A DNA stretch of 64,000 bases from Octopus bimaculoides (GCF_001194135.2 NC_068983.1:137441317-137505316), one strand, 5' to 3'; shown: positions 9,681-61,287, counted from the stretch's first letter. Numbers and translations: made by a program. The notes: generated from the sequence alone by a model not told the origin.

Positions 9681-9776
9681 CATTTTGTTGGTGGCAATGG
9701 ACCTACACGAGACCACCCTGATCCTCTACCTGTCAGACCAATGAATGTTCTCCATTCCTCAGCTGGTTACATAGAT
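9681..9776 (+). CDS. Isolated phase-0/phase-0 exon encoding a THAP-domain C-terminal segment (32 aa)
   Basis: Acceptor TTTTCTTCCACTCCAG|; HFVGGNGPTRDHPDPLPVRPMNVLHSSAGYID; donor GAT|GTAAGT. Matches the tail of V8 (HFIGKNGPTPEHPDPIP). Confidence 0.7.
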
Positions 9777-18609: not shown

Positions 18610-19002
18610 ATGCCTCGGCAAGCCGCATCCAGTGGACGTGGAACAAAAAAGCCGCCTGTGTCCAACGCCGCACGCAATCAACTCATAGATTGTTATGATC
18701 GTGGATCGAACTACAAGGACTTTGCTAAATCCATGGGAATTAATTTAAAGACTGCAAGCAGAATAATTTTAGACTATATAAAAACGGGCAAACGAGAAGC
18801 ATTACTCAAAGGCGGTAGATGCAATGTGAAAGTTGATGATGAGATGCGTGCCTACTTGTACGAAGCAATAAATAACAATCCATCTATCACCTTGCGGAAG
18901 ATAAATGAGGGTATGAGATTGAATTTGCCACAAAAACCACTTGTAAGCGATGGATGCATTTCACGAACTCTTGATCGCATGCTGCTAACAAGAAAAAAAT
19001 TG
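18610..19002 (+). CDS. Variable exon V3: Tc1/IS630-type transposase N-terminal bipartite HTH (131 aa), phase-0 donor
   Basis: RNQLIDCYDRGSNYKDFAKSMGINLKTASRIIL...KGGR...NPSITLRKI...VSDGCISRTLDRMLLTRKKL stops where the DDE domain would begin. Donor TTG|GTGTGT at 19002/19003 is weaker than the others. Confidence 0.75.
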
Positions 19003-20119
19003 GTGTGTAATATAAGTATTGAATTTTGTCGTAATTGTTTTTAAATGATTCTGTATAAATAGAACGAAGAAGTATCGTTATTTTCTCATTTATCAAAAAT
19101 GAATCCAAGAAATGTGGAGGGAGGGGTCGAAAAGCTTCCAAATATTTTACAAAGAAAACAGTTGGATGTTCAGTTTAATTTTTCATTTCCTTAAGAAGTT
19201 TAAAAAAAAAAAAAGAAACTAGCAACAAGCTAGTTATAACTATACTGTGGACGGCTAATTGTAGTATTTTATATATATAAATAAGGTACATAATAATCAT
19301 AGATACGAACATTCACATACTTATACATGCACACACATACTCAGAGGTTCACCGTCCCATTTCCATTGCACACACATTCACATACCTCCCTTTTACATAC
19401 ACACATACAGAGTTGAAACGCTGATTTTTTTTCTCTCACCCCTTCCTTTGTTATTCATTTATCACCCCTTACTTTCTCATATGTTGTGACGGAGAAAGAC
19501 GGAAGATACACGACGCGCTCTTTGCTACTTCCTTTCTCTCGCTCAGTCAGCGCTATTACTCTTACTTCACTGAATTACTATTTTCCCTCCTCTCCCTTCA
19601 CTTATACTACTTTTTCTCCTACTTTGTGGACAAATATATATAAAAACACTGCGGTCATTATATTAGGAGATAAATCGAAATCAGCTACATCACTGGTTCA
19701 CTCTTGCGGTATAGTTTCACATTGCAGTTTAAATTAGTTCACTTCTGTCTCTGGTGCTCATGAGACAGGCATGAACGTCATGCATACTCTTCCTGTACAC
19801 GTGCACAACTGATTATCGGCTCCGTTGTCAGTTGCTTGTTTATGATGCTAGGAAGCATCATGTATATTCCTGAATTTATGAACCTGGTCTCAGATCTTTA
19901 TTCCTTTTCTATTTTCAATCTCCAAATGGTGTGAATATTGAAATTAAAAACTAAAATAATTATCGATTTATGTAAACTAATTCAAATGCCTTTTTTTTTT
20001 TTTTTAGCTCAATTTTTGTTTGAATTCCATAGGTAAACGTATTTTGTGTTTCGAGAGTAGTTGGAAGTTTGTGCCAAATAAGCAAGAGAGCACATTATAA
20101 AAAGCAGGAGTGGGAGTTG

Positions 20120-20128
20120 GCGCATGCG
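20120..20128. promoter_or_regulatory. NRF1-like GCGCATGCG motif upstream of V4
   Basis: About 100 bp upstream of the V4 ATG, with TATAAAA about 25 bp further upstream. Confidence 0.45.
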
Positions 20129-20229
20129 TATCGTTTATTTGGCCGACATATCTCTATTCTTCGCTGGAATATTTTTCTATCTTAATACTTCTTTCTTTAT
20201 TATTATTCATATTATTTCATACTGTAGTC

Positions 20230-20565
20230 ATGCCAGCTTGTGTTGTGGTAGGTTGTAAAGTAAGGGCTACCAAAGAAAATTCTGCGCTCGGCTTGCGGTT
20301 GCATAGATTCCCGCGAAACCCTCATCGGCGTCAGTTGTGGGTAAATGCTATAAACAGGCCAGACTGGATTGCTAGCGACAACGACCGTATCTGTGGCTTG
20401 CATTTCCACAGCCGATACCCCGTTCGTAATACAGCCAGTATTGATTATGTCCCTACAATATTTTCATCAAGGCCACAGGATGAATCTAACTTTGTTACCG
20501 AACAAAGACTGAAATGTTTCAACACTGTAAACAACAGTGCCACGAGATATCCTGATAATGTGATT
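20230..20565 (+). CDS. Variable exon V4: THAP domain (112 aa), phase-0 donor
   Basis: MPACVVVGC...HRFP...LWVNAI...ICGLHF...VPTIF has a complete C2CH signature. Acceptor CTGTAG|TCATG; donor ATT|GTAAGT at 20565/20566. Confidence 0.9.
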
Positions 20566-21557
20566 GTAAGTTTGTTGGGTTCCATGTTATACGATCATGT
20601 AATGTCATTTTTAAGTCAGGGATTTCATTTGGAAAGTTCTTTTTTTTATCAGTTACGCAACTTTATTTTTGTCATGTACTTTTCTATACCCTTGTTTAAT
20701 GTAAAGGGCTTATCTAGTTTTATAATTAAATAATATGCCGCTCACATCACTAACTTTAATAGGCAGTATAGTGACATCCACCAACTTACAATAAAGTATA
20801 AAATTTACTAATTGCTGCACATAATTAGAGAAATAAGTTGGTTAGATTGCATTAGCCTATGGATGTGACTGCTATTTCACACACAAGCTCCTTCAATTGA
20901 CTCGATCCACTTTGCAGTTTCCTCTTAAAATCTTTTGCAAGGGATGTGCCATACCTCATAAAGTTTCCTTATCTGTTTAAATTCTTGGATTTAATTACTT
21001 GTCCTATAAAGTTGATCTATGTCTTGTATATCCTATAATTGTCGGTTACTTTTGCAGAATACCCTAACACAATAGTTATCTGATTTAACATAAACCCAGC
21101 AAATATGAGGGGAGTGGTTTAGTCGATACCATTGACAGTATGAATGAAAATGTAATATGTATTCTATAAATATATTACTATTCTTCTTCCTTTCTTACAA
21201 TTTAAATACTGCTGTTTGAATTTAAGATTTTAAATACAAACGAAATATACATTCATACACTTAATATTTATATGTACATTGCCACAAGTTAAGTTGAAAA
21301 TATGTAGGAAAGTAATACAATATTAAACTTTACAACTCACATCATTCTGTTATTGAAAGCGAACGAGTATACTATATTAAAGCTTTCGTTGTAGTTTATC
21401 TATCCGGGTATGTTTGTTTTTTGTTTTTCTGTTGTTTTTTTTAGAATTTTAGTTCATTTACGAAGCTAAAATATTGGTTGATCTTTTCAAATTACAAGTT
21501 ACATTTTTAGACGATTTAATAAATCGTCTGTTGTGGCCTTAAAGCAAATCCATTACT

Positions 21558-23517: not shown

Positions 23518-23970
23518 ATGTCTTTACGTACAGCTTCTAGTTCTTTTACGAAACGTAAACGAACCTATTTGACATTAGAGACCAAGTTAGAGATTCTTGG
23601 ACGGGCCGAATCTGGAGAAGGTTCATCTGCATTAGGCCGTATGTTCGGTGTTGGAGAGAGCACTATTCGTTCGATAAAAAAAAATGCTGACAAAATAAAG
23701 AATTCCGTGTTATACTCCTCGCCGTTTTCTGGAACGGTAACCAGGATAGGGAATACCGCGTTAAAAAGAACTGAAAAGGTGCTTGGAACTTGGATAACGA
23801 AACAGCTACAAAACAAGAAGTTTAGCCTCAGCACGATATGTATTAGAGACAAAGCACTGGCTATTTACGAGCGTTTTGTTCAAGACCAGGGTGGAAGTTA
23901 CGAACCTTTTGTTGCTAGTAAAGGATGGTTAAACAATTTTCTAAAGCGTACAGGCTTTGATTCGTTAAAG
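23518..23970 (+). CDS. Variable exon V5: CENP-B/pogo (Tigger-type) psq-HTH plus Tc5-HTH (151 aa), phase-0 donor
   Basis: KRKRTYLTLETKLEIL...GVGESTIRSIKKN...IRDKALAIY...FVASKGWLNNFLKR, truncated before the DDE domain. Donor AAG|GTAAAT at 23970/23971. GC-box at 23309. Confidence 0.92.
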
Positions 23971-24234: not shown

Positions 24235-24546
24235 ATGGTTCACTGTGTTGCTTTCGGTTGCAGTAATCAAACAGGAAGTGGTAGAAGTTTTTTCCGCTTT
24301 CCTGACAGCAACACAAGGCCACATATATACAAGGAATGGTTATCAAGGGTTAATCGGGCAGAATTTATCCCTTCGAAATACTCTAGTTTGTGTTCGGATC
24401 ACTTCGAACGAAACTGCTATGTAAAAGACCCTAATTTACTCAAGCACTGGGGCATCAAAATAAAACAACGACTTAAACCAGACGCGGTACCAACTATCTT
24501 CAACTTCAAACCAATCCGACGACGAGGAGCGAAGAAGCGGTTTGAG
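24235..24546 (+). CDS. Variable exon V6: THAP domain (104 aa), phase-0 donor
   Basis: MVHCVAFGCSN...FFRFP...EWL...LCSDHF...RLKPDAVPTIF followed by basic RRRGAKKR. Donor GAG|GTAGAT at 24546/24547. YY1-like CGCCATCTT at 24135. Confidence 0.9.
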
Positions 24547-24905: not shown

Positions 24906-25280
24906 ATGGAGCCTACTTGCAAGGCAAAGTGGTGGTGTATTGTACATCAGTGTAGCTCTGATTCGCGCAAGAATGTTAGTCTCTATCCATTCATGCGTGG
25001 TGTTCGCTTTTTCCCCTTTCCTACTGCCAAGAAAGATCCGTACATGCGTCAACTTTGGACGCAGCTAGTAAGACGTGGTGACAACTGGGATGGTCCAAAA
25101 AAACATCATCGCGTTTGCTCTAGACACTTTAAAGATGGAGAGCCTAGCCCTCAAAATCCTGCTCCGACTATTTTCCCATGGACACCTGCTCAAACAATCT
25201 TTCCTAAAATTGATTTTAGAGCTCGGGACAGTAAAAAGCTCTATGGTGGTAAAGCCACTTTGGAGTTTCCTCTTCCTCAA
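24906..25280 (+). CDS. Variable exon V7: THAP domain (125 aa), phase-0 donor
   Basis: WCIVHQC...FFPFP...LWTQLVRR...VCSRHF...PAPTIFPW. Donor CAA|GTAAGT at 25280/25281. GTCACGTGA at 24787. Confidence 0.9.
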
Positions 25281-29579: not shown

Positions 29580-29852
29580 ATGCCGGCCAATCGTCATTGT
29601 AGCTATGGTACCTGTAAAAGTGATAGCCGTTATCCTAACCGACCGCAAATGAAAGGGGTTTGGTGGATTCCATTCCCTAAACCACACAAAGACTTACCGA
29701 AGTGTCAGCGTTGGGTGAAAGCTTGCGGTCGATTATACTTCACTGTTAATAACATCAAACCATGGACATATTTATGTAGCTTGCATTTTATTGGTAAGAA
29801 CGGCCCCACTCCGGAGCACCCTGACCCTATACCGCTATTGGATTCTTACCAG
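29580..29852 (+). CDS. Variable exon V8: THAP domain (91 aa), phase-0 donor
   Basis: MPANRHCSYGTC...IPFPKP...RWVKACGR...LCSLHF...PDPIP. Donor CAG|GTTAAT at 29852/29853. Confidence 0.88.
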
Positions 29853-30363
29853 GTTAATTGATTTTTTTTGTTATATATTTTTCTTCTGTATTGTTTGCCT
29901 TTGTTTTCTAGAGACATTTTAACATCTGGTGCGATTTTATTCGATTGGATGGGTCTGCTATTCAGTAATTGGCTTCTCGAAATATATTGTTTCGCGGTAG
30001 CTTTATTCCCGATCTTCCTCTTGCTATTACCTAGCTATTAGTTGCCATGTAATAGTGTAATAGCTAGAACTATGACTACGGATGTTCTCATTGGCTAGTG
30101 CATCTCACGTGGACTTACTACTGTCGGTCAATAGTCTACTGTTCCCCATGGGAAATAAGTGTGATACAGAAAAATGGCGGTGTGAGAAATATGAGAGTGG
30201 AAGCAGCTTTTGCATCATAGTATCATTAACGTAATTCTTTACACACGTTGCTGCAGCCGATTTTTTTGCACTGTATGGTTCTATATTTAGTCAAAAGCTA
30301 GCAGTTATTGCTGATTGCTCATAGATTTCCTTATATAATTATTTCTTAATTCTGTCACTCAAC

Positions 30364-31365
30364 ATGGCGTCCAACAACCTAGGCGATTCCCAACCAGAAA
30401 CACAAAACCCTAAAGCATGTGTTTCTCCAAACCATATGAACGGTGTGGAGCTTATTGATTTAGATGAATCGTTACGAACTCAAAATATTATTAAAAGTGC
30501 TGTCAAAATTCTAAAGGACTATTGTAGGACTCAACACACAACTTTGTCTTTATTAGAGAAAAAGCCTGCTCAACAATTAAGCCGATTTCTGCAAAAGTTC
30601 TACACAGAGGTGCGCCAGGTTAGTGGTAAACTCTATGCTCGGAAATCGATGATTACGTTGCGTTACGGTTTACAGCGTCACTTCAAGAGAATGTCGCATT
30701 TAGATATTATAACAGATGACGAATTCATCGAAGCCAATGAAGTGTTCAGTGTAATTTTGATGAAATTGAGGGCAATGGGCAAGGATGCTATTAAGCGTAA
30801 GAATCCTATTACAGAGGAAGATATACAGAAAATTATGCTATCGTCAGCTCTGGATCAGGACAAACCACGAGGTTTGCAAAATAAGGTATTCATGGATTTA
30901 ATGTTGCATATGTGTAGCCGCGGGCGCGATAATCTGCGGGAGATTTCGAAACGAGACTTCAGTATTGAATTATCACCTCAGGGTCTGCAATATGTGACCT
31001 TTCGGGTTGGAGCTGAACTGAACAGCAATGGGGATCCTCATGTTAATGAAGTACGCATGTATGAAATACCCGGTAATAAATGGTGCCCGCTGACTTCTTT
31101 CAAAAAATACATTAGCCTCTTAAATCCACTCTGTGATGCTTTTTGGCAAAGAAGCAAGCAGAATGTGAATCCAGATGAAGTTCCATGGTATGATAACATG
31201 CCAATTGGTAAAAACACTCTCGGAACTCGAATGAAAGAGATTTCTCGAGAGGCTGGTTGTTCTCAGATCTACACAAATCATTGTCTGCGAACCACGCAAA
31301 TTTCTACGTTAAGGATTTATAATATGGACTTACCTCAACAATCAGGAATATCATATTTACTGCAG
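30364..31365 (+). CDS. Variable exon V9: Crypton-derived tyrosine-recombinase-fold domain (DUF3504/ZMYM/QRICH1/KIAA1958-like, 334 aa), phase-0 donor
   Basis: LSRFLQKFYTEVR..SGKLY..SMITLRYGLQRHF, LQNKVF..RGRDNLR, CPLTSFKKY, WY..PIGKNTLG, TNHCLR. Donor CAG|GTGGGT at 31365/31366. YY1 motif AAAATGGCGG at 30171. Confidence 0.9.
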
Positions 31366-32321
31366 GTGGGTTGGTAAAAATATTGTCAGTTTCAGGAGTT
31401 TCTCACATTTAGTATCGTTATTAAAGAGTATCACATTCTTGCTTTGTAAATATTTATGACTTAATTTGTTTTTGTATTTTTGTTTTATCATGAAACTTTT
31501 TTTTTCTTTATAATTTTGTTTAATAATTGTGTGTGTGTGTGTGTGTGTATATAATTACATACAGAATAACGTGCTCACAAATTAAAGAAGAGTTGTTTTA
31601 TTATATTCGGGAGCGGCAGAGCTATTCTATTTCGATCGGTGGTGGGTTTGTTCACAACTTGGTTGGAAATAAAATCACTAATTAAATTATATAGTGCGAC
31701 GTTGTCAAAGCTTTTCTCTGGTCCCTTGCAGCTTCGTGCACTTGCCAGTTGGCGTAGGATTACATGTTGTTTTCTGTGTTGTTCGGTTGTGCGTAAGATT
31801 GTTAAAGGAGTTTCACCTTCTAGGGCTGAAAGGACTTTTCTTCGCTATTGTGGTTGACGACTGACCTGTCTCGGTGTTAGGTTTGTCACAATGAAGAGAC
31901 GTAGGTAGCATATCCTTTCTAATATCTTTCTGTTGGTCGGTCGTCAGTAGCTGATCTCTTATCGTATTGGTTGTTCAGACTGCTTTCTTTGCCAGTGGAC
32001 AAGTCACAGCAGCAGTCTTCCTACTAGAGAACTAGTCTTCCTTTCTATCTAATAGCATACCCACTCACTAATTCATGAACACGAGGTTCACAACCTGCCG
32101 CCATTTTAATGTTCTCGTTTTTATGGAATATTTTCAATGTTTATTTTTTTTTTTTCATTCCGCCCGTCCCAGCTTCTACACTTTTTATTTTGATTTCCCT
32201 CCATTCTTCATCAATCTAGTTTTTCACCGTTCAGTTGCAGCTTCCGCCCCACCCCCTTCTCTCCATTCAATAAGTAAAGCTTCAATCGCCCGCTGCAGTA
32301 AAGCAAATTTTGTAATTTGTG

Positions 32322-32774
32322 ATGGTTTTTGTTCGGAAGTTTAAGGGCCCATCTTCTGAGGATAGTGTTCAGTGCCCTGTTCGATCGTGTTCAACTGTAT
32401 TAAGTAAATTTCGCAACCTACCGAAGCATTTACGTTCGAAGCACAGGTTTAATGAGCCTATCGTGAAATCGATTGTAAGTCGAATCAGGAATTGTGTTAA
32501 GGGCATTGAGGATTTTTGTGAAGGAAATCTACCGGAGAAAGTCTGGTCGAATAGTAGCAGCAGTTCTAGTATATTTCATGCCGATGACAAATTTGAACAG
32601 TCTGTCGTCAACAGTGTCAGATTTCAGAATGAGACGAGTGTGACGTCCAGCTCCACCCTCACTACAACCTCGGAATTCCACGGAGATTCTCCGTTCGGGT
32701 TGCTTCGGAATGTTTGTGATAATACGATTCGCCACATACCTTTGCCGCTGATCGATTACATTAAACTGCCCCTG
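32322..32774 (+). CDS. Variable exon V10: single C2H2 zinc finger plus Ser-rich linker (151 aa), phase-0 donor
   Basis: CPVRSC-x12-HLRSKH (C-x4-C-x12-H-x4-H). Donor CTG|GTAAGT at 32774/32775. GC-box CCGCCCC at 32244. Confidence 0.8.
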
Positions 32775-33056
32775 GTAAGTGGTCAAGGATATATATATAA
32801 TATTCATCTGACAGCTTAAATATTGAAATTTAATAATTTCAAAATAATTACTTTACTTCGTAATTCAGATTCTGTTGACACAATCTTCAGTAATATTGCT
32901 GTTGTGTTTATCTATTTTTAAATTTAAATTTTCTATTGTGTAAATCTTTGGGTTGATAAGATGATGGCAGTTACAAATCAACAGACTTCGATTACCTTTT
33001 AACTCCGAAACAATTTTTATATAGGACGCTTGTCTTTGAATTTGAATTTAAGGAAA

Positions 33057-33416
33057 ATGGAGAATACAGAGGGTTTCCTGTTTAATAACAACACGACGTA
33101 TAGCACCGGTGTCCTAGCACAGAAAAGTAGTGTTCATTTCATCCCCAAAAGTGTTAGGTATACGAAATCGTCGCTTAGTTCTTTGAACGAGCTCCAGAGA
33201 ACCTATCCTTGGTTACTGGTACAGTTGCGTCCAAACCAAAATCCGTTAGCTAGCTGTGCTGTCTGCCAGAAGTATTGGTTCTCCAGCACTAGGTCTGCTT
33301 TAAAAAATGCTTGGGTCCAAGGTAGTGTTGACTTGGGATCCAGCCATAGGAAAAGTAAACTTCTTCTGCACGAGAAATCTGAACTACATTCCAAGTGTAT
33401 AGCACGAAGTTTAAAG
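33057..33416 (+). CDS. Variable exon V11: hAT-type TTF-like zinc finger (120 aa), phase-0 donor
   Basis: YPWL...CAVC...W...SKLLLHEKSELHSKC. Acceptor TTTTATATAG| at 33024; donor AAG|GTAAGT at 33416/33417. Confidence 0.8.
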
Positions 33417-34113
33417 GTAAGTAATTTTTGTGGTGAAGTAATTTCAATTAGGATATTAAGAATGGTCGACTTTAGTTTACATTAACATATTTTTATGACA
33501 ACTTACATATATATGTATTTTTATTGCTTAGAGAGCTACCGTTCTCTGCTTTTTCCTCACTATTTCTCTCTACTCTTTTATTAGCTGGTTTGGAACTTAG
33601 ATTTATTCTCCATTGCACTATGGATGTTGACTAATTTATCTCGCTTTTGATTATGATATAAACTTCAGTTTTTCTTTATTCCAACATATTATTTTTATAC
33701 TTATGTTCAACTGTTCACGGAAAGGTGTGTCTTCAGTGAAGTATAGTGAAATAATTTACTGTTTCTACTGAAATAGTTTGTTCAGTGCTAGTTTAATAGA
33801 AATAAGTACCAGTCAGATATTGGGTCAATATCTCTCCAAAAACTTTCAGGTCTTGTGTAAGGAGACTAGCTATGAATTGGGGTGGATGTTGCGTAGCTAT
33901 TCAAAATACAATGATATTTGTATCTTTCAGTAATAGTTTAAACTAATTATTTCTTATTGAATAAGTGGCTACAAGAATATTCTGGGTTTGTTTTGCAAAA
34001 TAAACATATTCATTGAGATAAACAAGGCAGAGCTTAACTTGTTTTGTCATTTTAGTGCACTCTGAAGTTGCAATTATGTTATTTTTCTTCAAATAGTCTC
34101 TTTATGCTTACAG

Positions 34114-34349
34114 GCAGGACCTTCAAATCAAGTATTTTCCGGAAAGCCTGAGAACCCTAGGCGTAAAAAGATTGCTGCTGCCACTGTCTCGTCTGCACCA
34201 GTACTCATTCCAGATGATTCACCTCCTCAACCTTCACCTGCAAAAATTCAGAAAAAGCAAATTGATGATCGACGCTTTGATGAGCAACGCTTCCAGGAGC
34301 AGCGTTTCCAGGAACGGAGGTTTGAAAATCGTCGATTTGATGACCGGCG
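34114..34349 (+). CDS. Constant region 1, exon A (phase 0 in, phase 2 out): basic/Pro-rich linker with pentapeptide repeat
   Basis: Acceptor TTTATGCTTACAG|GCAGGA; AGPSNQVFSGKPENPRRKK...DDRRFDEQRFQEQRFQERRFENRRFDDR; donor CG|GTATGT. No ATG in this reading frame. Confidence 0.88.
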
Positions 34350-34434
34350 GTATGTATGATTAATTGGTTTCTTTCACCTCTTAATTTTGAACATCACTAG
34401 TGATTTTCTTCTAAAATGTAAATTTTCATTTCAG

Positions 34435-34738
34435 ACAAATGGTTAACACTCAGGTATCTCAGATGGCTGCAAAAACACTACAAGCTCAAATGCCAGTCCA
34501 GCAGCATATGAGTGTGGCCCAGGTTTCTCAAAATATTACAAGGCCTGTTCAAGTGTTAGCTCCACCAATTCAAATAAGTGAGCCCAAACCGAAGCCTGTG
34601 GAAAAACCTCGACCACGAGAAAAACGAATATTTGTTGTCGCTGATCATCAGCGTTGTGTCATGTCCAATCTAGCATCTCTGTGGAAAAGTGGAAAGTTGT
34701 GTGATGCTGGTATTGGTAATGGCTCATCTACTGTGATG
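34435..34738 (+). CDS. Constant region 1, exon B: Gln/Pro-rich linker plus N-terminal part of BTB/POZ
   Basis: Acceptor TTTCATTTCAG|A restores the frame; ...ADHQRCVMSNLASLWKSGKLCDAGIGNGSSTVM; donor ATG|GTAGGT (phase 0). Confidence 0.92.
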
Positions 34739-35086
34739 GTAGGTATATTGCTTTTAACATTAATATTCTCTGGCTGCAAATTAATTTACTGACTATTTAA
34801 AGAACATTTCATGAAACAAATGAAGAATGCATGTTTTCTATCAGACTAATCTTCCAGAAATAATAGTATTAGAATATCAAGTTCTTCCTTTGGGACTGGA
34901 CCTGTTTCTTGCAGGAAATCGATATGATTTCTTGAATTAACTTATTTGTAATACTGACACATTATAAAACCTTGTAGAATCTTCAAGGAATGTATTTTTA
35001 TTTCTAAGAGTGGTTTTACTTTTTTATGTTTTGTTTCCCATTCATATATTTCCCTATGTAATTGATTCCTTGTGTTTGTGTTTCAG

Positions 35087-36151
35087 GTGCATAAAGTTGT
35101 CCTGTCTGCTGTGTGTCCAAAACTGTTGTCAGTATTCAGTACAGATATCCTCTCTCACAAGTTTCTCCAAGTAAACTTTCCTGAAGAAGTTAGCACAGAA
35201 GCTTTAAATGCCTTTGCTGAATATATGTACAATGGGCTATTAGATATTGATCCTGATATTTTACATCAGTTAAAAATCATTGCAAAACGTTTGGACATGA
35301 AAGAATTTGAACAACTGTGTGATAGTCGTCTTCCAAGCACAATACCTCAGCAACCAGCTTCAACGGTTACTGTATTTGGTGATCTCAGCCAGATGCAGAC
35401 CATTCTATCAAACCCACCCAGTATTACAGTTCCAACAGTTCAACCATCTCTGCCTTCATCATCCATCACATCAGTTACATCTCAATCTGCTCCATCTGTC
35501 ACTACACAAGTCATTGATGTTAAACAAGAGATATCTGAGGCTGAATTAGCACAAGTTAAGAAAGATACAGCAGCTGTCTTTGGACAGGAATCTGAGGTTG
35601 CTTCACTAGATGCTAGTAAAAGTGGCAATTCCTCTGGTGGTTTTGTCATTGTTCCCAGTGTGAAAACTGAACCTGTAGGGCCTGAAGATGACAGGTATGG
35701 TCAGCTGAATAATCAGTCTTACGCATCTACTCCAGTATCAATCAGTTCTCGGATACCAGGTACCGGTTTGAATTCTACGGTTGTGTCCTCTTCAGAATTT
35801 GTTTTACCATTTTCAGACACCACAGATAGCAACACAACAAATGTATTGCAAGGAACGTCTAAATTAAAATCTAATGTATTTGAAAGCTCTCTAGTTTCTG
35901 ACTTATCCCCTGTATCATGTATTGTAGAAAAAATGTGTTCTCAGTCCAGTCCCATTAGAGAAGACCCTTCCAAACCGCTAAATCGAACTATAACAACTCA
36001 GTCAATTGACAACATTGTGACTTCTGGTAGTAATGAAGGTGTCTATCCTGTAGGACTTTTTACAGCAGGAGGGGACAGTTTACCATTATCATCAACACAA
36101 GTTACCAATGTCAAAAATATAGGTTTATATAAAACAGATGGTCTTACTTGA
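35087..36151 (+). CDS. Constant region 1, exon C: BTB/POZ core plus Ser/Thr-rich tail, stop TGA
   Basis: Acceptor TTTCAG|GTGCAT; VHKVVLSAVCP...AFAEYMYNGLLDI...IAKRLDMKEFEQLC. Constant region 1 totals 534 aa and has no zinc finger or Kelch domain. Confidence 0.93.
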   Translation: MHKVVLSAVCPKLLSVFSTDILSHKFLQVNFPEEVSTEALNAFAEYMYNGLLDIDPDILHQLKIIAKRLDMKEFEQLCDSRLPSTIPQQPASTVTVFGDLSQMQTILSNPPSITVPTVQPSLPSSSITSVTSQSAPSVTTQVIDVKQEISEAELAQVKKDTAAVFGQESEVASLDASKSGNSSGGFVIVPSVKTEPVGPEDDRYGQLNNQSYASTPVSISSRIPGTGLNSTVVSSSEFVLPFSDTTDSNTTNVLQGTSKLKSNVFESSLVSDLSPVSCIVEKMCSQSSPIREDPSKPLNRTITTQSIDNIVTSGSNEGVYPVGLFTAGGDSLPLSSTQVTNVKNIGLYKTDGLT

Positions 36152-45857: not shown

Positions 45858-46232
45858 ATGGAATTCACTGTTACTAAACGTGGCGGCAGGAAATTACTAT
45901 ACAATGGATACGCTTATACTGTCGACAAGAAGAAAAATAATATTACATATTGGAAATGTGAAGAAAGAAGAAAATGCGTTGCAAGACTCAAAACAATTGA
46001 TGATGTTCTTCAGTATGATCCACCACCACATTCTCACCCACAAGATGCCTGTAGAAACGTTGTTCTCAAAACAATACAACAAATTACAGCAGGAGCTAAC
46101 GACACAGAAGTTACGAGTACGATAATTGAGAATTGTACACCGGCTTTACCTCAAGAAACAGCAAGTTCCCTATCCCTAAAGGAAAATCCAAACAGAAAAA
46201 GGAGAAAAATGGAAATATTTCAAACGCACAAA
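45858..46232 (+). CDS. Variable exon V12: FLYWCH zinc finger (Mutator-type, 125 aa), phase-0 donor
   Basis: TKRGGRKLLYNGYAY...YWKC..RKCVARL...HSH followed by basic NRKRRK. Acceptor TTTTATATAG| at 45834; donor AAA|GTAAAC at 46232/46233. Confidence 0.88.
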
Positions 46233-46570
46233 GTAAACATATCTACTTTTTTTTATATTATCATTTGTGTATTTTATCACACACTCAAATTTAATAGGAA
46301 AATTAGTGATATTCTTTAGCATTGGTTTTGAAACGCTAAATGAAAATCCTATTTATTTGATTCAAATTCTTAGAACTTGCTTCACATAATATATACTTTC
46401 ATTATTCAGGGCTTATACGGATTGAGACATCACACACACTCCTGTGTGTGTGTGTGTGTGTGTGCGCACGTATGTATGTCTACAGTACCCAGATATGCAC
46501 CTATACATAACAGGTGGATGTCGGTATGCACATACCTGTACGTATATATGCATATACTCATTTACTCTAT

Positions 46571-46746: not shown

Positions 46747-47518
46747 AAACAAAACACAAAGGATTCTGCGGTACACGTGTTTCAAGCTTTATAGTTGTTA
46801 CATCAGTGTATAATTGACAGTATAAAGCTATCTTCAGCCGCAAATGTATTCTCTCCCAAGAATTATATCACATAGAAAGATGAGATATAAGAGGTGAGGT
46901 TCCGTTTGGTATTTTGTGTTGCAATATACCTCGTAGAATTCTTAATTTGATATATTTATACATAATTTCCTCGGTACTCCGGAATCCAACCCGTCTAAAT
47001 GGCTTAGATGTATCTTAATTTACTATCCAAATTTTCTCTTATTGTTTCTTAGATCACCCGCCTCACCGATTTGACTCCTTTTATTTTTATTTTTGTATGA
47101 ATATCTGTGTATTTTTCTTCTTAGTATTTTATATTCCTTATTTTATNNNNNNNNNNNNNNNNNNNNNNNNNNNNNNNCTTTAACACTACCCTTATAACTA
47201 ATATTAAATAGTATTGTTTACTTAGCGTTCACTACACACTGAATTGTGGCAAGGTATGGACGGATTCCGGAGTACCAAGGAAATTATGTATAAATATATC
47301 AAATTAAGAATTCTACGAGGTATATTGCAATACAAAATACCAAACGGAACCTCACCTCTTATATCTCATCTTTCTTCCTCCTTTAACTTCTATGTGATAT
47401 AATTCTTGGGAGAGAATACATTTGCGACTGAAGATAGCTTTATACTGTCTATTATACACTGATGTAACAACTATAAAGCTTGAAACATGTGTACCGCAGA
47501 ATCCTTTGTGTTCTGTTT
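46747..47518. mobile_element. MITE-like element with ~250-bp inverted arms (31-N gap inside)
   Basis: 46747-46995 is the reverse complement of about 47258-47518, with several mismatches and one indel. Confidence 0.7.
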
Positions 47519-47649: not shown

Positions 47650-47809
47650 GATAAATGTATATATACACGTACAGGTATATATATATATATATATATATGT
47701 ATTATATATATTATATATACATGTATATATATGTTTCTATATGTATGTATATATATATTTATGTGTATATATATATATATATTCTATATATATGTATGTA
47801 TGTATATCC

Positions 47810-50340
47810 CAGGGTCACACAGGCCCACTCCTCCCACACCGTCAGAATTGGCACTCTCAACATCGGCACACTGAAAGGTAGGTCTGGTGAGATTGTTGAG
47901 ATGCTTGAACGGAGACGGGTAGATTTGTGCTGCATCCAAGAAGTAAGTTGGAGAGGAGGTTCTACGAGGTTCCTCACAGGCAAAGAACACAGATACAATA
48001 TTTTCTGGGCAGGGAACACTGACGGAGTCGGGGGCATGGGAATACTCCTAGCAGAGAAATGGGTTGATAAGGTAATTGAGGTAGTCAGAATATGTGACAG
48101 AGTACTTAAGATTAGACTAGTGCTTCATCATAGGTTAGCTACCGTCATCTCGGCCTATGCCCCTCAATCGGGACTACTGGATGGGAAGAAAGACCAATTC
48201 TACTACACCCTTCTGCAAACTACCTCATTGACGAATGACGGGGACCTTCTCTTTGTGGCTGGTGATTTCAATGGTCATGTTGGACGTCATGCAGGGGGCT
48301 TCCATGGCATTCATGGAGGCTATGGCTTCAGTTCCTGCAATGAGGAGGGAACCAGACTGCTGGAGTTCTGTGATGCAAACGATCTTATGGTTTGCCATGC
48401 CAACTTCAGGAAACCTGCCTGTCAACTAGTCACCTACTGTTCTGGTAGACACTCTAGCCAAATTGACTACATCCACGCCAGAAATAGGGAAAGAGGGCGA
48501 CTTATAGAATCCAAAACCTTCCCTGGCGAAGAATGTACCCCTTAACACAGATTAGTAGTTAGTGACTTCGGAATCAAGGCAGAAGTAGACCGGCTTGGAG
48601 GAGAAGGGTTTGGAAGCTTAAAGATCCTGAAAATGGACAGAGATTTAGAGACATACTACTTGAAGCATTTGACGAAATAGAAGGGGATATAGCATCATAC
48701 AACGTGGACGACAACTGGAGGTTTCTACGCGACAACCTGCTGAGAGCCACCGACCAGATCTGTGGCTGATGTAAAGTCCTCTCGCGACCCATAGTAACAT
48801 GGTGGTGGAACAATGTGGTTGACAGGGCTATTAGACAAAAGAAACAGGCTTGAAAGGACTGGAAGAACGGAGGTAGCAGGGAACTGTATCAGACTGCTGG
48901 AAGGGAAGCTAGGAGACAGGTTTACTTAGCCAGAGGGGAAGCAGATAAGAAAAAGTTTGCCAATGTTCTGTGCCGTGAGGACCAAAGACTTGAAGTATTT
49001 CGTGTTGCAAGACAGTGTGTGAGAGAGATGGTACACTTGCACTATATGAGGCTGCAAAGAAAGAGGTTTGGAGATGCCACTATGAAAGGTTGCTCAATAA
49101 AGAGAATGAATGGGAGAAAGAAAGTCTGCTGAATGTCGACCCAACAGAGGGACCAGCTATCCAAACTGACAGTACCATGGTAGATAAAGCAATTAAGACT
49201 ATGAAGACAGGGAAAGCCCCCGGCCCATCAGGAATCACCGCAGAGATGCTCAAAATATCTGGTAGTGTCGGCTATAGCCTAGTCACCCATACTGTTAACC
49301 AGGTGCTACACGAAGGAGTCATACCCAATGACTGATGTAGCAGCACCATAGTCAACTGTTACAAAGGTAATGGTGACACTTTAGATACAAATAATTACAG
49401 AGGTATCAAGTTGTTAGATCAGGTAATGAAAGTCACTGAGAGGGTCATAGCCCGACTAATTAGGGAGCTAGTCAGTTTAGATGAGATGCAGTTTGGGTTC
49501 ATGCCAGGGAAAAGCACCACTGATGCTATATTTCTGGTAAGACAGCTGCAGGAGAAATACCTAGCCAAGGATAAACCTCTGTACTTGGCTTTCGTTGATA
49601 TGGAGAAAGCCTTTGACAGGATCCCCTGATCCCTCATCTGGTGGTCAATGAGGAAACTAGGGATAGAAGAATGGTTAGTGAGAGCTGTGTGAGCCATGTA
49701 CAGGGACGCTGTCAGTAAGGTGAGGGTTGGCAATGAGTACAATGAAGAATTCTGGGTAGAGGTAGGGGTCCACCAAGGTTCTGTCCTCAGCTTCCTCCTA
49801 TTTATCATAGTCCTCCAGGCGATAACAGAGGTATTCAAGACAGGATGCCCCTGGGAGCTGCTCTACGCTGATGACCTTGCACTAATTGCTGAGTCACTAT
49901 CAGAACTAGAGAAGTTTCAGGTGTGGAAGCAGGGACTAGAATTGAAGGGCCTTAGAGTCAACCTAGCTAAAACCAAAGTCCTAATAAGTAGAAAGGTAGA
50001 CAAAACACAAACCCCTTCAGGTAAATGGCCCTGCTCGATCGGTACAAAAGGTGTATGTGGCAGATGTTCAGGTGCAATAAACACTGAAAATGTGCAGAAA
50101 ACAACTTCTGTCACATTCCAGGGAGAAAAACTGGACGTAGTTGATAGCTTCCGATATCTGGGTGACCAAGTTAGTAATGGGGGTGGGTGCGCTGAAAGTG
50201 TAGCTGCTAGAATAAGAATAGCCTGGGCAAAGTTCAGAGAGCTCTTACCTCTGCTGGTCACAAAGGGCCTCTCACTCAGAGTAAAAGGCAGACTGTATGA
50301 CGCATGTGTACGAACAGCCATGCTACATGACAGTGAAACA
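47810..50340 (+). mobile_element. RTE-clade LINE (APE endonuclease plus RT), inactivated by stops, 3' end lost in a gap
   Basis: RIGTLNIGTL, AYAPQ, GDFNGHVG, SQIDYI, KAPGPSGI, QFGF, AFVDMEKAFD, GVHQGSVLS, LLYADDL; several in-frame stops. Confidence 0.95.
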
Positions 50341-50887
50341 NNNNNNNNNNNNNNNNNNNNNNNNNNNNNNNNNNNNNNNNNNNNNNNNNNNNNNNNNNNN
50401 NNNNNNNNNNNNNNNNNNNNNNNNNNNNNNNNNNNNNNNNNNNNNNNNNNNNNNNNNNNNNNNNNNNNNNNNNNNNNNNNNNNNNNNNNNNNNNNNNNNN
50501 NNNNNNNNNNNNNNNNNNNNNNNNNNNNNNNNNNNNNNNNNNNNNNNNNNNNNNNNNNNNNNNNNNNNNNNNNNNNNNNNNNNNNNNNNNNNNNNNNNNN
50601 NNNNNNNNNNNNNNNNNNNNNNNNNNNNNNNNNNNNNNNNNNNNNNNNNNNNNNNNNNNNNNNNNNNNNNNNNNNNNNNNNNNNNNNNNNNNNNNNNNNN
50701 NNNNNNNNNNNNNNNNNNNNNNNNNNNNNNNNNNNNNNNNNNNNNNNNNNNNNNNNNNNNNNNNNNNNNNNNNNNNNNNNNNNNNNNNNNNNNNNNNNNN
50801 NNNNNNNNNNNNNNNNNNNNNNNNNNNNNNNNNNNNNNNNNNNNNNNNNNNNNNNNNNNNNNNNNNNNNNNNNNNNNNNNNNNNNNN
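50341..50887. other. Assembly gap (other gaps at 47147-47177 and 52763-52978)
   Basis: Runs of N. Confidence 1.
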
Positions 50888-52344: not shown

Positions 52345-53893
52345 TTTGATCCTTTCACCTGCACGATTTTCATTCAGAAAAAAAAACTCAGAATGTTTGT
52401 ATGGAATTAAGTACCCTGATCTCCTAATTATGCTGCAAACTCCTTATTTTTTTTTTTGGAAAAAAGGGAGGAGGTCTGGTCACCACCCATCCCCCATATT
52501 CTGGAATCATTGGAATTTTTTTTTTTTCGTTGAATGAATTCTGGTGACTTCCTAATATGCTACAGAACCGTTTTTGGATCCGGAAAATGGGGTGGGGTGA
52601 AGTGAAAGCCTTGGAAATTTCACCTCCCACCTCCATTGATCTTGCATGATTTTCACTAAGAAAAAAATACTCGGATTTTTTGCATGGAATCAAGTAACCT
52701 GACCTCCTAATATGCTGTAAACCACTTATTTTTGTTCGGAAAAAAAGGGTGTGTGGGAAACCNNNNNNNNNNNNNNNNNNNNNNNNNNNNNNNNNNNNNN
52801 NNNNNNNNNNNNNNNNNNNNNNNNNNNNNNNNNNNNNNNNNNNNNNNNNNNNNNNNNNNNNNNNNNNNNNNNNNNNNNNNNNNNNNNNNNNNNNNNNNNN
52901 NNNNNNNNNNNNNNNNNNNNNNNNNNNNNNNNNNNNNNNNNNNNNNNNNNNNNNNNNNNNNNNNNNNNNNNNNNNNNNAAACGGGGTGGGGTGAAACCCT
53001 CGGAAATTTCACCCACACTCCCATTTTCAAATAATTTTTGCTATTTCTTTCTTTATCCATAATTTTAGATAACATTTTGCAGAAATATGTTTTCTCCACA
53101 CACAAAACTGAAACGCATTTCGGCACTAGAAATAGATTTTCTCTTTGCAATTTTTGGCGTCGAAATTTGTTTCATTTTGTGGGGGGAGTTGAGTGGGTGA
53201 CGAAGTTTACCGAAACATTGAATGGATAACAATCTATCGTAATTATATATATCATTATACATCATCATCACCATCATCATTTAACGTCTGCTTTTTATGC
53301 TGGCATGGGTTGAACGGTTTGACAGGACCGGCAAGCCAGGAAAATCTATTCGGGATTATTATATATATTATATCCAGTGATTTTAAGAGGTAGGGAAAAG
53401 ATATTTTGTTAATATTACACTTTTGCTCCGTTTCACTCATACATGCAAAAACTCTAACGTGTTTTTCTTAAGATGAATTCATCGTTTATCTCTCCGCACT
53501 TCGTTACCCCTAACTTCTATAACCTCTGCATTTTCACTTATTTATTTCAAACTTCTTTGAATTTTCAATCTAATGTAATCTACACTCTCTCGAAATCCTA
53601 TTTCTGCAAAATCTTATCTAAAATGATGGGTAAAGAAAGAAATAGCAAAACATATTTGAAAATGGAGGTGGGGGGTGAAATTTCCGCGGGTTCCACACCA
53701 CCCCGTTTTCCTGACCCCCAAAAAGGTTTAGTAGCATATTAGGTCACCAGAATTCACTCAAGGAAAAAAAAAATTCCAATGATTCGGGGATGTGGGGGGG
53801 GGGTCCGATTTACCCCCTTCCTTTTTTTCCGAACAAAAATAAGGAGTTTGCAGCATAGGAGGTCAGGACACTTGATTCCACGCAAAAAATTCG

Positions 53894-56245: not shown

Positions 56246-57601
56246 TGTCGGATCCTGTTGAACCACCCAGCCCATGTGTGCATAGAGTATGTGCACACAC
56301 ATACTTATATGTGCATGTATACATATGTAACAAGCTTCCATGCAGTTTCCATCAACCAAATTCACTCACAAGGTATTGGTAAACCCACAATATCCAAAAC
56401 ATGACTCAAACTCATACACATACAATGGGCTTCTTTCAGTTCCCATCTACCAAATCCACTCACAAAGGTTTGTTTGGCTATATAGAAAGACACTTGCCCA
56501 GTCCATGCGGTTGGATTGAACTCCAAGCCATGGAAGTGAAGTTCTTAACCACACAGCTTTGTTTGCACTTTTCTCTCTCTGTAGAATCATGTGTTTCATG
56601 TTCATAACATCAATATACTTAAAACCATTTAGTCTTTTTGTAACAAAATAAATCTTGCAATTATAATTCTAAATATGTTTGTCAAACCATTGGATAATAA
56701 ATCTGGGGCAGGACTGGTTGAAAGAGATGTTAAGCTGCTACAAATAAACAAACCATATTGTACAGTTGCAGGTGTAGTTATGACAAATTTTAACTTGATG
56801 AAAATTACCTATAGAAAAAGTCATGTGGCAATTGAAACCATGCCTTGTTGATGATGAAATATATTATGTTTCTGTAACTGATTGTTCATGAATTCAAGTA
56901 AACTGATCACTGGTAGGTCTGTAGAGTCAGATTATGCTCGGTGTTTTACAAGCTGTACTACTCTTTAGCTATAAATAAGGATTTCTTACTTGAGTATATG
57001 GCTTCAGATTTGTATGACTATGAGAAAGAAATTTTATGATGTTCATGCCTTTTTTCAGAAACTTTAAAATGTTGAAGAAGTGAAATAGCTACAACAAAAT
57101 TAAGCAAAGTCATGGACAATCCTTCCTAGCTACTAACTGTTATTCTACAGTATCCAGCAAAGTGATAAAATACTGGAATTTGTTGAGTAGTAGGAAAGGA
57201 ATTGTATGATACCCATGCCATTTGCAAGAGTATTAATAATGTAATTGATGTAAAATATTTACAGTTGAGAGTCAGACTCAAGCTGTTTCACTTGAGTCTG
57301 ACTATTAGTAATCAAAATATAATTTAAGACTTGAACTCTTCTCTAAAAACAATTATTATCTTTTATAACAAAGTGCAAGCCTGTGTGGCTAAGGTTTCGA
57401 TTCATAATTGATCAGTGGTACATTGCTGTACTCTGAGTAAGACGCTAGTTTGTACCAGATTCATGAACTTATCTAAGGTCATATTCTCTCGCTTCTTTAG
57501 AAATTAATAAAACTTCACATTTTCTGCATAATGTAGGGATATTTTTCTACATAAAAGTTCAAACTTGTTTTCTGTTCTTGAATCTATTTTATTATTTGTA
57601 G

Positions 57602-57801
57602 GCAGGCTCATCAAATAAAAACTTATATTTAAACAAAAAAAAGCAGCCTCCTAGCTCTCCTGCTACAGTTCTTATCTCAGACAGTAACCATCCTCCATCT
57701 CCACCTGCCAAAATTCCTAAGAGGCAGGCTTTTCTCAAAGAATTTCAGGAAGAAAATTTGAAAATAAAGAAAAATTGTCAAGAAAATGATTTTACTGACA
57801 G
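57602..57801 (+). CDS. Constant region 2 (paralog), exon A (phase 0 in, phase 2 out)
   Basis: TTTGTAG|GCAGGC; AGSSN...VLISDSNHPPSPPAKIPKRQ aligns with AGPSN...VLIPDDSPPQPSPAKIQKKQ; donor AG|GTAACT. Confidence 0.85.
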
Positions 57802-57894
57802 GTAACTAAATGACTTTTTGACAGCTTCTTACTATGCAAGTATTTTCTGATGAGTTCATGCATTTATCATAATTTTTATCTCAATAAATTTCAG

Positions 57895-58189
57895 GCAAAA
57901 TATTGGTCATATCTCTAAGATAGCTGAGAATTCTCAGGAACCTTCAATCAAAAACCTTATCTGTGTGGTTGAGGAGTCTGAAAATATGCCAGATCCAGTT
58001 CGATTCTCTACTTTTCAAGTTCCAATACCTACTACGCAACCACAGGCCATTGAAATACCACAGCCTCAAGGGAAGAAAATATTTATTCTTGCTGATCATC
58101 AGAAAAATGTAATGTCCAGCCTAGCATTGCTATGGAAGAGTGGAAAATTATGTGATGCTAGTATTGACAATGGTTCATCTACAGTGATG
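57895..58189 (+). CDS. Constant region 2, exon B: N-terminal part of BTB/POZ
   Basis: TTTCAG|G; ...ILADHQKNVMSSLALLWKSGKLCDASIDNGSSTVM; donor ATG|GTAAGT. Confidence 0.9.
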
Positions 58190-58512
58190 GTAAGTTTAAT
58201 TAAAGACTTTATTATGTTAATTTTTTAATCTTTTCCTATATTTGTTTTTCTTTGAGCTTAATAATCCTGAAAAAATTCAAATAATTGCAAGGATTGTTGG
58301 AACAGAAGATTTTAAGCATAGATACTATGATACCTATGTTTGGTGTAGTGTGGAGCATGTTCTGTGTGAACATATTAACTCTGCGAAAGGTTCTTCTAGA
58401 TAACCACATCCAAATATTTATTTGGGTTATACTACTCCTACACCTTTGTGCACACCCAGTGTTGTGATAACATTATTGGCAATGAGATATTCAAACCCCT
58501 GAAGACATAACA

Positions 58513-60279: not shown

Positions 60280-61287
60280 GTACATAAAGTTGTCTTATTT
60301 GCTGTATGTCCTAAACTGTTGTCAGTATTTGGTGCAGAGATGCTCTCTCAGAACTTTCTCCACATTAACTTACCACAGGAAGTTAGCACAAAAGCCTTAG
60401 ATGCTTTTGCTGATTATATGTATAATGGAATTCTAGATCTTGATCCAAATATTTTACATCAGTTAAAAATCATTGCAAAACGTTTGGAAATGAAAGATTT
60501 TGAACAACTGTGTGATAGTCAACTGCCTAATACAACACATCAGCAACCTATTACAACTACTAATGCATTTGTTGCTTCCAACCCAATGACAGGTAATGTA
60601 TCTGTGTCACAAAATGTTACAACACCGAATCAGCTTTCTCCATGTTTCTCTTCAATATCATCTAACTTTCTTTCAACTAACACTACACTATCCAGTGGTA
60701 TTAATGACAAGATTTCAAGAGCTGAATTATTACCCAAAGAAAATAGAGTTACATTGTTTGGAAACAACTCTAAGGTTGCCTTATTAGATACTATAGATAT
60801 CAATTCCTCTGGTAATTTTGTCATGGCTCCCACGGTGAAGAATGAACCCATGGAACCTGAAGAAAGCAGATATGAGCATAGTAAGTTCTATTCATCCATT
60901 CCAATTTCAAACGGTTCTCGGACACGAAGCACCATGCTGAATTGTAAGGATGCATCCACTTCAGAATTTGTTTTACCATTGTTAGATACCACACATAGCA
61001 AAGCAATAACAAATGTGATGCGTGGAACATCATCTAAATTAAAATCTAATACATTTGAAAGCTCTTTACATTCTAACTTAGAATTTGCATTGCGTACTGA
61101 AAAGAACATGTGTTTCCAATCTAACCCCATAAGAGAAAACCCTTCTAAACCACAAAATCAAACTATAACAATTCAGTCATTTGATAACATGGTGACATCT
61201 AGTGGCAATAAAAGTGTGTATCCTGCAGGACATTTTACAGTAGGAAGGAACAGAAAACAATTATCATCAGTGCAACTGCCAGTATGA
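60280..61287 (+). CDS. Constant region 2, exon C: BTB/POZ core plus Ser/Thr/Asn-rich tail, stop TGA
   Basis: TTTCAG|GTACAT; VHKVVLFAVCP...AFADYMYNGILDL...IAKRLEMKDFEQLC. Constant region 2 totals 500 aa. Confidence 0.92.
   Translation, partial: VHKVVLFAVCPKLLSVFGAEMLSQNFLHINLPQEVSTKALDAFADYMYNGILDLDPNILHQLKIIAKRLEMKDFEQLCDSQLPNTTHQQPITTTNAFVASNPMTGNVSVSQNVTTPNQLSPCFSSISSNFLSTNTTLSSGINDKISRAELLPKENRVTLFGNNSKVALLDTIDINSSGNFVMAPTVKNEPMEPEESRYEHSKFYSSIPISNGSRTRSTMLNCKDASTSEFVLPLLDTTHSKAITNVMRGTSSKLKSNTFESSLHSNLEFALRTEKNMCFQSNPIRENPSKPQNQTITIQSFDNMVTSSGNKSVYPAGHFTVGRNRKQLSSVQLPV

Follow-up and report, generated by a model that had tools for sequence, protein, structure and literature searches.

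The DUF3504 domain is a domesticated Crypton recombinase that occurs in KCTD1, KIAA1958, ZMYM2-4, QRICH1 and WOC (Kojima and Jurka 2011, PMC3212892). In KCTD1 a Crypton was inserted upstream of the gene in early vertebrates, and in isoform b (KCTD1b) the DUF3504 domain lies within a single exon before the BTB domain; all of the vertebrate DUF3504 genes lack both the active-site Tyr and the second Arg, and two of the human carriers, ZMYM2 and ZMYM3, are linked to disease (PMC3212892). Fusions between host genes and transposases that arose by splicing capture have been reported in a survey of vertebrate DNA transposons (Cosby et al., bioRxiv 10.1101/2020.05.07.082677). Here we describe a 64,000-nucleotide stretch of the Octopus bimaculoides genome (GCF_001194135.2 NC_068983.1:137441317-137505316, referred to below as the window), in which the RefSeq model of isoform X3 of the gene LOC106877732 joins a Crypton-like exon to a BTB/POZ domain. 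Full-text literature searches turned up no account of a Crypton-BTB gene in cephalopods; one preprint describes BTB domains on octopus THAP and CENP-B proteins, without an exon array or Cryptons. Sequence comparison identifies the exon as a Crypton-derived recombinase domain that lacks the catalytic Tyr and is part of a conserved host gene under purifying selection, which makes X3 a further, convergent member of an established class, the domesticated Crypton (DUF3504) genes.

The plus strand of the window contains an intact, ATG-initiated open reading frame (ORF) of 337 amino acids (30364..31377), the first 334 codons of which form the Crypton exon. This exon stops at a consensus donor (CAG/GTGGGT) whose phase-0 partner is the acceptor ttacag/GCAGGA at 34114, and when it is joined to the three constant exons downstream (coordinates in Table 1) a coding sequence of 2607 nucleotides (868 codons) is obtained, in which all introns are GT-AG and compatible in phase. 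The spliced 868-residue product is identical, residue for residue, to XP_014782192.1, annotated as isoform X3 of O. bimaculoides LOC106877732, "uncharacterized protein". The isoform was already in RefSeq, without a name or interpretation, an annotation that an earlier note on this DNA had missed. That note had proposed the junction 31365-34114, and the same junction (GISYLLQ/AGPSNQ) is present in the X3 models of O. bimaculoides and O. sinensis (XP_029634400.1) and in the O. vulgaris annotation (CAI9720179.1). The constant exons of the window are 100% identical to six LOC106877732 isoforms among the matches listed. Exact look-up retrieved the X3 RefSeq proteins, which a word-indexed search with the Crypton exon had not listed; a 202-residue peptide spanning the junction likewise gave no match in a word-indexed protein search, a result that is uninformative since the same index misses X3 RefSeq proteins that are 98-100% identical.

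The Crypton exon matches Crypton-like proteins with phmmer E values of 1e-158 to 1e-60, and its relatives, several of which are from sea urchins, include proteins with 40-50% identity over ~290 residues (E 1e-89 to 1e-60). An exhaustive representative search recovered 373 clusters at E<=1e-30 and 4536 at E<=1e-3. Many of the 40-50% identical relatives give hits to the Pfam Phage_integrase domain together with the full Crypton signature (NRGRENLR, LTKN, YTNHCLR and SGHKSESSIKHY), and in nearly all of the best 150 representatives the homology stops at query residue ~316-317. The AlphaFold2 model of the exon (pLDDT 80.6, with 192 residues at >=90) predicts a disordered segment (residues 1-33), a helical N-terminal domain (~37-137), an alpha/beta domain with the catalytic fold (~151-318) and an unstructured tail (319-334). 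A recombinase fold had been claimed for this exon, and when the model was compared with the PDB using Foldseek the top 14 places were filled by Cre chains (E 6e-6 to 1.6e-4, probability 1.0, ~305-340 aligned columns covering both domains), followed by XerA, XerH, IntI4 and Flp. A fold search was needed because a profile of the family, run against PDB sequences, did not reach Cre; its matches were limited to XerA and a staphylococcal integrase, in the region of box II (E ~6e-3 to 7.5e-3). According to the model, the exon has a tyrosine-recombinase-superfamily fold with the two-domain arrangement of Cre and lambda Int.

The full catalytic set of this superfamily (Arg-I, the beta-hairpin Lys, His-II, Arg-II, His/Trp-III and Tyr) is not present in the exon. 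We take the corresponding Cre residues to be R173, K201, H289, R292, Trp315 and Tyr324. Catalytic columns were read from two alignments (A1 and A2) and tied to the Cre residues via the alignment in Additional file 4 of PMC3212892. The R(G) motif and HxxR (TNHCLR) are kept, as the earlier note had claimed: Arg186 lies in the context S-R186-G-R-D-N-L-R, and His306 and Arg309 in Y-T-N-H306-C-L-R309. In the profile alignment of the family, box II and the Tyr box correspond to HVLR...GH...Y of XerA. The beta-hairpin Lys, the general acid of the set, is replaced by Ser221, a loss additional to those in the earlier note; this column reads LNSN in the window, GSEA or GSET in the lineage of a more distant octopodiform (L001, ENA ERZ21867824) and LTKN in free Cryptons, and the loop is modelled with pLDDT <50. 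The same note had claimed that the terminal GHxSxxSxxxY box is replaced at the donor, and the end of the exon does read DLPQQSGISYLLQ where free Cryptons read SGHKSESSIKHY, with the tail YNMDLPQQSGISYLLQ in place of the box. The exon stops 25 residues past Arg309, and both His/Trp-III and a nucleophilic Tyr at the canonical position are absent. These alignments agree with the proposed inactivity and make it very unlikely that the X3 protein catalyses recombination.

Tyr331 was considered as a displaced catalytic Tyr and rejected, as it lies 22 residues past Arg309, compared with ~33 in free Cryptons, within the tail modelled at pLDDT <50; it is further ruled out by its non-conservation in the L001 lineage. 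When positions 10973-11035 of L001 are compared with 31345-31365 of the window, 14 extra codons (SRQRSSFDIHKWYDYKKKKNVQ) are observed before the conserved Q/GT donor. Relative to the GHxSxxSxxxY box these codons show the changes G to R, H to Q and Y to W, and they have the appearance of a degenerate relic of the box that would have been deleted in the Octopus lineage.

Comparison between species indicates that the exon has been maintained. It shows 95.3% nucleotide identity and 0 indels relative to another Octopus species (L007), versus 78-86% in the non-coding flanks, which are rich in indels; the 34.5 synonymous and 12.5 non-synonymous differences correspond to a ratio of non-synonymous to synonymous rates (dN/dS) of 0.086, representing strong purifying selection. 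Against L001, the proportions of differing non-synonymous (pN) and synonymous (pS) sites are 0.17 and 0.87, the latter saturated. The donor is identical in L007 and reads CAG/GTTGGT, also in phase 0, in L001. The order of elements in L001 is the same as that in the window, namely four THAP exons, the Crypton exon, two ORFs at the slots of the zinc-finger exons (the first with 67% identity to the X15 exon), constant exons and BTB. The THAP and Crypton part of this order is also kept in L006-L009, of which L006-L008 represent a third Octopus species used for comparison. No second Crypton-like region is found in the 64-kb window, and in the representative search the only relatives more than 50% identical to the exon are orthologues. 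The earlier note had left room for a copy of a transposable element (TE); from the single copy in the window, the syntenic slot that it occupies in four further assemblies and the purifying selection, we conclude that this is very probably a maintained host exon rather than a transposon copy.

The domain to which the Crypton exon is joined belongs to the classic BTB family PF00651, scoring 34.6 bits against a cut-off of 20.5 for the constant exon 3 portion alone and 41.6 bits in the full-length isoform X2 protein (P0030, described below). Its matches among solved structures are IVNS1ABP (the closest, E 1.3e-10), ZBTB17/BCL6, SLX4 and ZBTB18. The PDB search gave 28 hits at E<=0.01, none of which is a KCTD chain, and no other BTB-type Pfam family is found at E<=0.1 in the BTB-containing ORF, which bears out the proposal that the BTB is of a different subfamily from that of KCTD1. 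The constant region comprises a basic patch (PRRKK), RRF repeats, the BTB/POZ domain and a long Ser/Thr-rich tail; no BACK, 3-box or other non-BTB domain was detected in it.

KCTD1b is the nearest counterpart of this arrangement. In both genes a Crypton ORF that originates from the animal CryptonA-like group and carries the YTNHC motif occupies a single upstream exon of a long alternative isoform, in which DUF3504 is placed at the N-terminus and BTB at the C-terminus; the octopus exon shows 37% identity over 153 residues to the KCTD1 fragment. In contrast to the classic BTB of the octopus host, the KCTD BTB is of the tetramerisation (T1) type. The octopus exon keeps Arg-II, where KCTD1 has HCIG, and compared with the vertebrate DUF3504 genes overall it alone keeps Arg-II as well as His-II. 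Free Cryptons are nearer to it (49% identity) than is the fragment of KCTD1; many variable exons besides this one are present in the gene, and the gene family has taken Cryptons at least two more times. Loss of the catalytic Tyr, retention of the box II His and high conservation of the gene are also common to the two cases (PMC3212892). In a distance-based neighbour-joining tree of sampled representatives the X3 pair (100/100 bootstraps) is nested among Tyr-bearing free Cryptons. The BTB family, the relative identities and the early-vertebrate date of the KCTD1b insertion support the independence from KCTD1 that had been claimed.

Domesticated Cryptons with an incomplete catalytic set are likewise found in the nuclear regulators WOC, ZMYM2-4, QRICH1 and KIAA1958, but these are far more diverged, have lost the His and both late residues, and carry the domain C-terminally with MYM zinc fingers. 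Unlike these families, the octopus exon scores under their Pfam cut-offs and groups with free Cryptons. Autonomous CryptonA-type elements are its closest sequence relatives, sharing the two-domain fold and the RGREN and YTNHCLR motifs. The free relatives (P0003-P0014) keep LTKN and GHxSxxSxxxY, and most also have a C-terminal FxxCxV tail, whereas the octopus exon lacks all three and differs further in being single copy in the window, syntenic across species and placed in an in-frame splice model with host exons. Cre of phage P1 (PDB 1pvr, 4crx, 1crx), the best structural match, corresponds to the exon over both domains with Arg-I and HxxR in place, but is only 12-14% identical; equivalents of Lys201, Trp315 and Tyr324 and the helix M-N region are missing from the octopus protein. 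The fusions described by Cosby et al. are similar in that a TE domain becomes an exon and is joined by splicing to exons of the host, yielding a new putative transcription factor; their survey differs in making no mention of Crypton, tyrosine recombinases, KCTD1 or BTB.

Two further Crypton domains are associated with cephalopod BTB proteins. Isoform X2 of the octopus gene (P0030, XP_014782191.1), whose first exon lies upstream of the window, contains a different Crypton domain in which Arg-I is replaced by Asn and His-II by Gln. In cuttlefish, a 926-residue ORF with DUF3504 and BTB domains (P0064) is represented by mRNA contigs of 4.1-4.6 kb from several runs (L002-L005); in this protein the Lys and His-III are gone, but a Tyr remains in its canonical place (GQKSALYLSGY). 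As the cuttlefish genomic ORFs diverge at SSDM/VNIN, which is a GT donor, the 926-residue ORF is a spliced product. The beta-hairpin Lys has been lost in all three cephalopod Crypton-BTB exons (where S, E, N or G is found). The X3, X2 and cuttlefish domains show only 30-32% mutual identity, against the 49% between X3 and a free Crypton, and X3 grouped with the X2 or cuttlefish type in 0/100 bootstraps; on this evidence a single ancestral capture for all of these exons was rejected. The sequences are consistent with two more independent Crypton captures on the BTB family, represented by the X2 and cuttlefish exons, and the phylogeny agrees. No more BTB fusions were found among ten long relatives (690-1144 residues), in which the partner domains are C2H2, MYM-type zinc finger, MIEAP and zf-Tnp_2.

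The setting of the Crypton exon, which the earlier note had not seen, is an array (9681-36151, plus strand) in which the one constant BTB/POZ region of LOC106877732 is preceded by at least nine variable 5' exons (Table 1). Four variable exons supported by RefSeq (X3, X14, X15 and X18) join 34114 in phase 0, first exons from upstream of the window (X2, X5, X6 and X9) reach this acceptor by way of the mini-exon at 9681-9776, and five further ORFs, four of them THAP and one zf-C17orf113-like, have good phase-0 donors. Two members of the array are located within the X3 intron (32322-32774 and ~33153-33416). All sibling variable exons with a domain match are of DNA-binding types (THAP, CENP-B_N/Tc5 helix-turn-helix (HTH), winged HTH and zinc fingers), some of them below Pfam cut-offs. 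The array is built like the protocadherin and UGT1A clusters, and as in those a separate promoter probably serves each variable exon. A comparable principle is known from Drosophila mod(mdg4) and lola, where one BTB gene produces many isoforms that are distinguished solely by the interchangeable DNA-binding module they carry, FLYWCH or zinc fingers. These genes differ in having an N-terminal constant BTB and 3' variable exons that are partly trans-spliced, whereas in octopus the variable exons are 5', the BTB is downstream and a recombinase fold is included among the modules.

Table 1. Features of the Octopus bimaculoides window discussed in the text, in order of position (numbered from the first nucleotide of the window).
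Feature	Position	Strand	Basis
Mini-exon for first exons upstream of the window (isoforms X2, X5, X6, X9)	9681-9776	+	isoform mapping
HTH exon, isoform X18	18610-19002	+	joins 34114 in phase 0, RefSeq
THAP ORF	20110-20733	+	phase-0 donor
CENP-B_N + Tc5 HTH exon, isoform X14	23518-23970	+	joins 34114 in phase 0, RefSeq
THAP ORF	24235-24546	+	phase-0 donor
THAP ORF	~24933-25280	+	phase-0 donor
THAP ORF	29580-29852	+	phase-0 donor
Upstream region of Crypton exon; may hold promoter and 5' untranslated region	30000..30363	+	ATTGG, CACGTG, AAAATGGCGG
Crypton exon, variable first exon, domesticated tyrosine-recombinase ORF	30364..31365	+	homology, AlphaFold model, dN/dS
Arg186 (CGC), Arg-I, Cre R173 equivalent, retained	30919..30921	+	near-invariant column in A1, A2
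Ser221 (AGC) in place of beta-hairpin Lys, Cre K201, lost	31024..31026	+	alignment
His306-Cys-Leu-Arg309 (CAT TGT CTG CGA), box II HxxR, Cre H289/R292, retained	31279..31290	+	H306 and R309 invariant in A1
Tail replacing the GHxSxxSxxxY box	31318..31365	+	alignment; pLDDT <50 for residues 317-334
Isoform X3 intron, donor GTGGGT, acceptor ttacag	31366..34113	+	splice model, donor conservation
Zinc-finger-like exon, isoform X15	32322-32774	+	joins 34114 in phase 0, RefSeq
zf-C17orf113-like ORF	~33153-33416	+	phase-0 donor AAG/GTAAGT
Constant exon 1 (AGPSNQ...; PRRKK basic patch, RRF repeats)	34114..34349	+	common to all listed isoforms
Constant exon 2; BTB starts ~34643	34435..34738	+	splice model, BTB matches
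Constant exon 3: remaining BTB/POZ to ~35326, long Ser/Thr-rich tail, stop TGA 36149-36151	35087..36151	+	PF00651
LOC106877745, FLYWCH first exon	45858-46244	+	
LOC106877745, CENP-B/Tc5 ORF	from 54497	+	
LOC106877745, constant exons	~57578-58192, 60280-61287 (BTB)	+	

We consider it probable that these observations reflect the capture of a Crypton as a variable first exon, with an inactive recombinase fold serving as the DNA-targeting head of a BTB regulator. A Crypton DNA transposon would have landed in the 5' part of a BTB gene of an octopodiform ancestor, where its intronless tyrosine-recombinase ORF would have become one more variable first exon, linked by a GT donor in phase 0 to the exons for the basic linker, the BTB/POZ domain and the disordered tail. 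The resulting X3 isoform would be unable to cut or rejoin DNA; its recombinase fold, with the phosphate-binding Arg-His-Arg, would serve to recognise DNA without catalysis, and the BTB domain would provide dimerisation or oligomerisation and the recruitment of partners. Other isoforms would operate likewise, with THAP, CENP-B/Tc5 HTH, winged-HTH and zinc-finger heads. Sequence-specific DNA binding is suggested by the fold, the retained Arg-His-Arg and the sibling exons with THAP, CENP-B and zinc-finger domains, and by analogy with these siblings a DNA-targeting module of a BTB regulator is the most likely role for the Crypton exon.

Several points weigh against this account. The exon falls below the Pfam thresholds for DUF3504 (PF12012, 23.7 bits, gathering cut-off 29.7) and QRICH1 (PF25561, 25 bits, cut-off 30.8), and the domain assignment consequently rests on Crypton homology and fold; the free Crypton P0003 is likewise under both cut-offs, and the paralogous exons of P0030 and P0064 exceed that of PF12012. 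DUF3504 domains are without demonstrated function (PMC3212892). The support for 31365^34114 consists of computational RefSeq/Gnomon models, conservation and phase. It is possible, from an AG at ~30322, that the Crypton exon is preceded by an upstream leader exon, and no promoter motif common to the variable exons was found upstream of ten of them (a comparison of 9-mers returned T-runs only). Finally IVNS1ABP, the closest solved BTB, is a member of the KLHL family, which makes a role as CUL3 adaptor conceivable.

A function of the Crypton domain other than DNA binding, in protein interaction or as part of a CUL3 adaptor, seems unlikely to us. Such a role would be in keeping with the KLHL affinity of the BTB domain and with the fact that tyrosine recombinases form tetramers. 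Protein-protein interaction is moreover one of the two DUF3504 functions proposed by Kojima and Jurka, and the KCTD1 BTB works via protein binding to AP-2alpha (PMC3212892). However, the sibling exons that share its slot and have a domain match resemble DNA-binding domains without exception, which argues for DNA targeting, and purifying selection has preserved the phosphate-contacting residues Arg186, His306 and Arg309 despite the loss of catalysis; nor was a BACK, 3-box or other non-BTB domain detected in the constant region.

It is much less likely still that the ORF stands outside the BTB gene, as a decaying Crypton copy or a nested single-exon gene, in which case the RefSeq isoform would be an artefact of prediction. 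In favour of this reading, Crypton elements consist of a single ORF without introns, the octopus splice junction comes from computational gene models, and metagenome and Logan gene callers report a stand-alone ORF that reads into the intron (P0072, P0001 and P0002); this reading, however, adds just three residues (VGW), without a conserved C-terminus, and the truncation falls exactly at a consensus donor in the phase shared by the other variable exons, a donor conserved in L007 and L001 despite the 14-codon difference just upstream. Decay is at odds with the dN/dS of 0.086 and the 0 indels, and an artefact with the independent Gnomon models in two Octopus species, the same protein in the O. 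vulgaris annotation and the analogous cuttlefish fusion present as spliced mRNA. Least probable of all, to the point of being scarcely credible, is that a DNA-processing role has been kept, with the Arg-His-Arg pocket completed in trans or with DNA hydrolysed or held without a covalent intermediate: Arg186, His306 and Arg309 are kept across X3 orthologues, the cuttlefish protein retains its canonical Tyr, BTB oligomerisation would gather subunits and Flp donates its Tyr in trans, but the beta-hairpin Lys, which is essential in characterised tyrosine recombinases (Cre, Flp), is lost in all three cephalopod exons, His/Trp-III is absent, we know of no partner carrying the missing helix, and the vertebrate DUF3504 genes uniformly lack the Tyr and second Arg.

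If X3 is a BTB regulator with a Crypton-derived targeting head, it would be the second independent instance in which a Crypton recombinase has become an alternative N-terminal exon of a BTB gene, in another BTB subfamily and another phylum, with at least two or three such events within the cephalopods. This recurrence argues that the recombinase fold and BTB are a functionally favoured combination, rather than an accident of KCTD1 history. Being young enough that it still has Arg-His-Arg and ~50% identity to free Cryptons, the octopus domain would be a more tractable DUF3504 model than ZMYM, QRICH1 or KCTD1b. The variable-first-exon array would illustrate in compact form, in a lineage noted for its regulatory novelty, how transposon capture diversifies transcription factors. 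A bolder proposal, which we put forward as a doubtful one, is that the cephalopod BTB cluster is a "DNA-binding-domain capture array", in which first exons are repeatedly recruited from invading transposons (P-element THAP, pogo/Tc5 CENP-B HTH, FLYWCH and at least three separate Crypton recombinases) and each is spliced to a repressive or oligomerising BTB that regulates or represses the sites of that transposon family. Were this so, the dead Crypton domain would still read Crypton-end-like DNA via its Arg-His-Arg pocket, and the array, TE-derived and organised in the style of the protocadherins, would be analogous to the KRAB zinc-finger system of vertebrates.

Some additional features of the region were observed. 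The sequence between 29857 and 30363 is 86% identical to that of another Octopus species, versus ~78-79% for other non-coding flanks. ATTGG (inverted CCAAT), CACGTG and the YY1-like AAAATGGCGG occur at 30090-30180, 180-270 bp 5' of the Crypton ATG, in a block that is ~90% conserved between Octopus species and may be a private promoter. The zf-C17orf113-like ORF in the X3 intron shows 95% nucleotide identity to another Octopus species, with flanks at 60-80%; it is probably another variable exon, and is not among the isoforms returned. The tail of the nearest THAP exon (29784-29837, HFIGKNGPTPEHPDPIPLL) resembles the mini-exon at 9681-9776 (HFVGGNGPTRDHPDPLPVRP), with 67% identity over 18 residues, and the mini-exon may be the remnant of a THAP exon.

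Downstream of LOC106877732 is a tandem paralogue with the same plan, LOC106877745 (45858-61287, plus strand), and database matches point to a cluster of such BTB genes in Octopus (LOC106877737, -738, -741, -743, -744 and -745). Between the two BTB genes of the window, in a GC-richer stretch, lies a retrotransposon fragment resembling a long interspersed nuclear element (47655-50340, plus strand), which encodes Exo_endo_phos endonuclease and RVT_1 reverse transcriptase domains; this stretch is broken by assembly gaps (N runs) at 47147-47177, 50341-50887 and 52763-52978.

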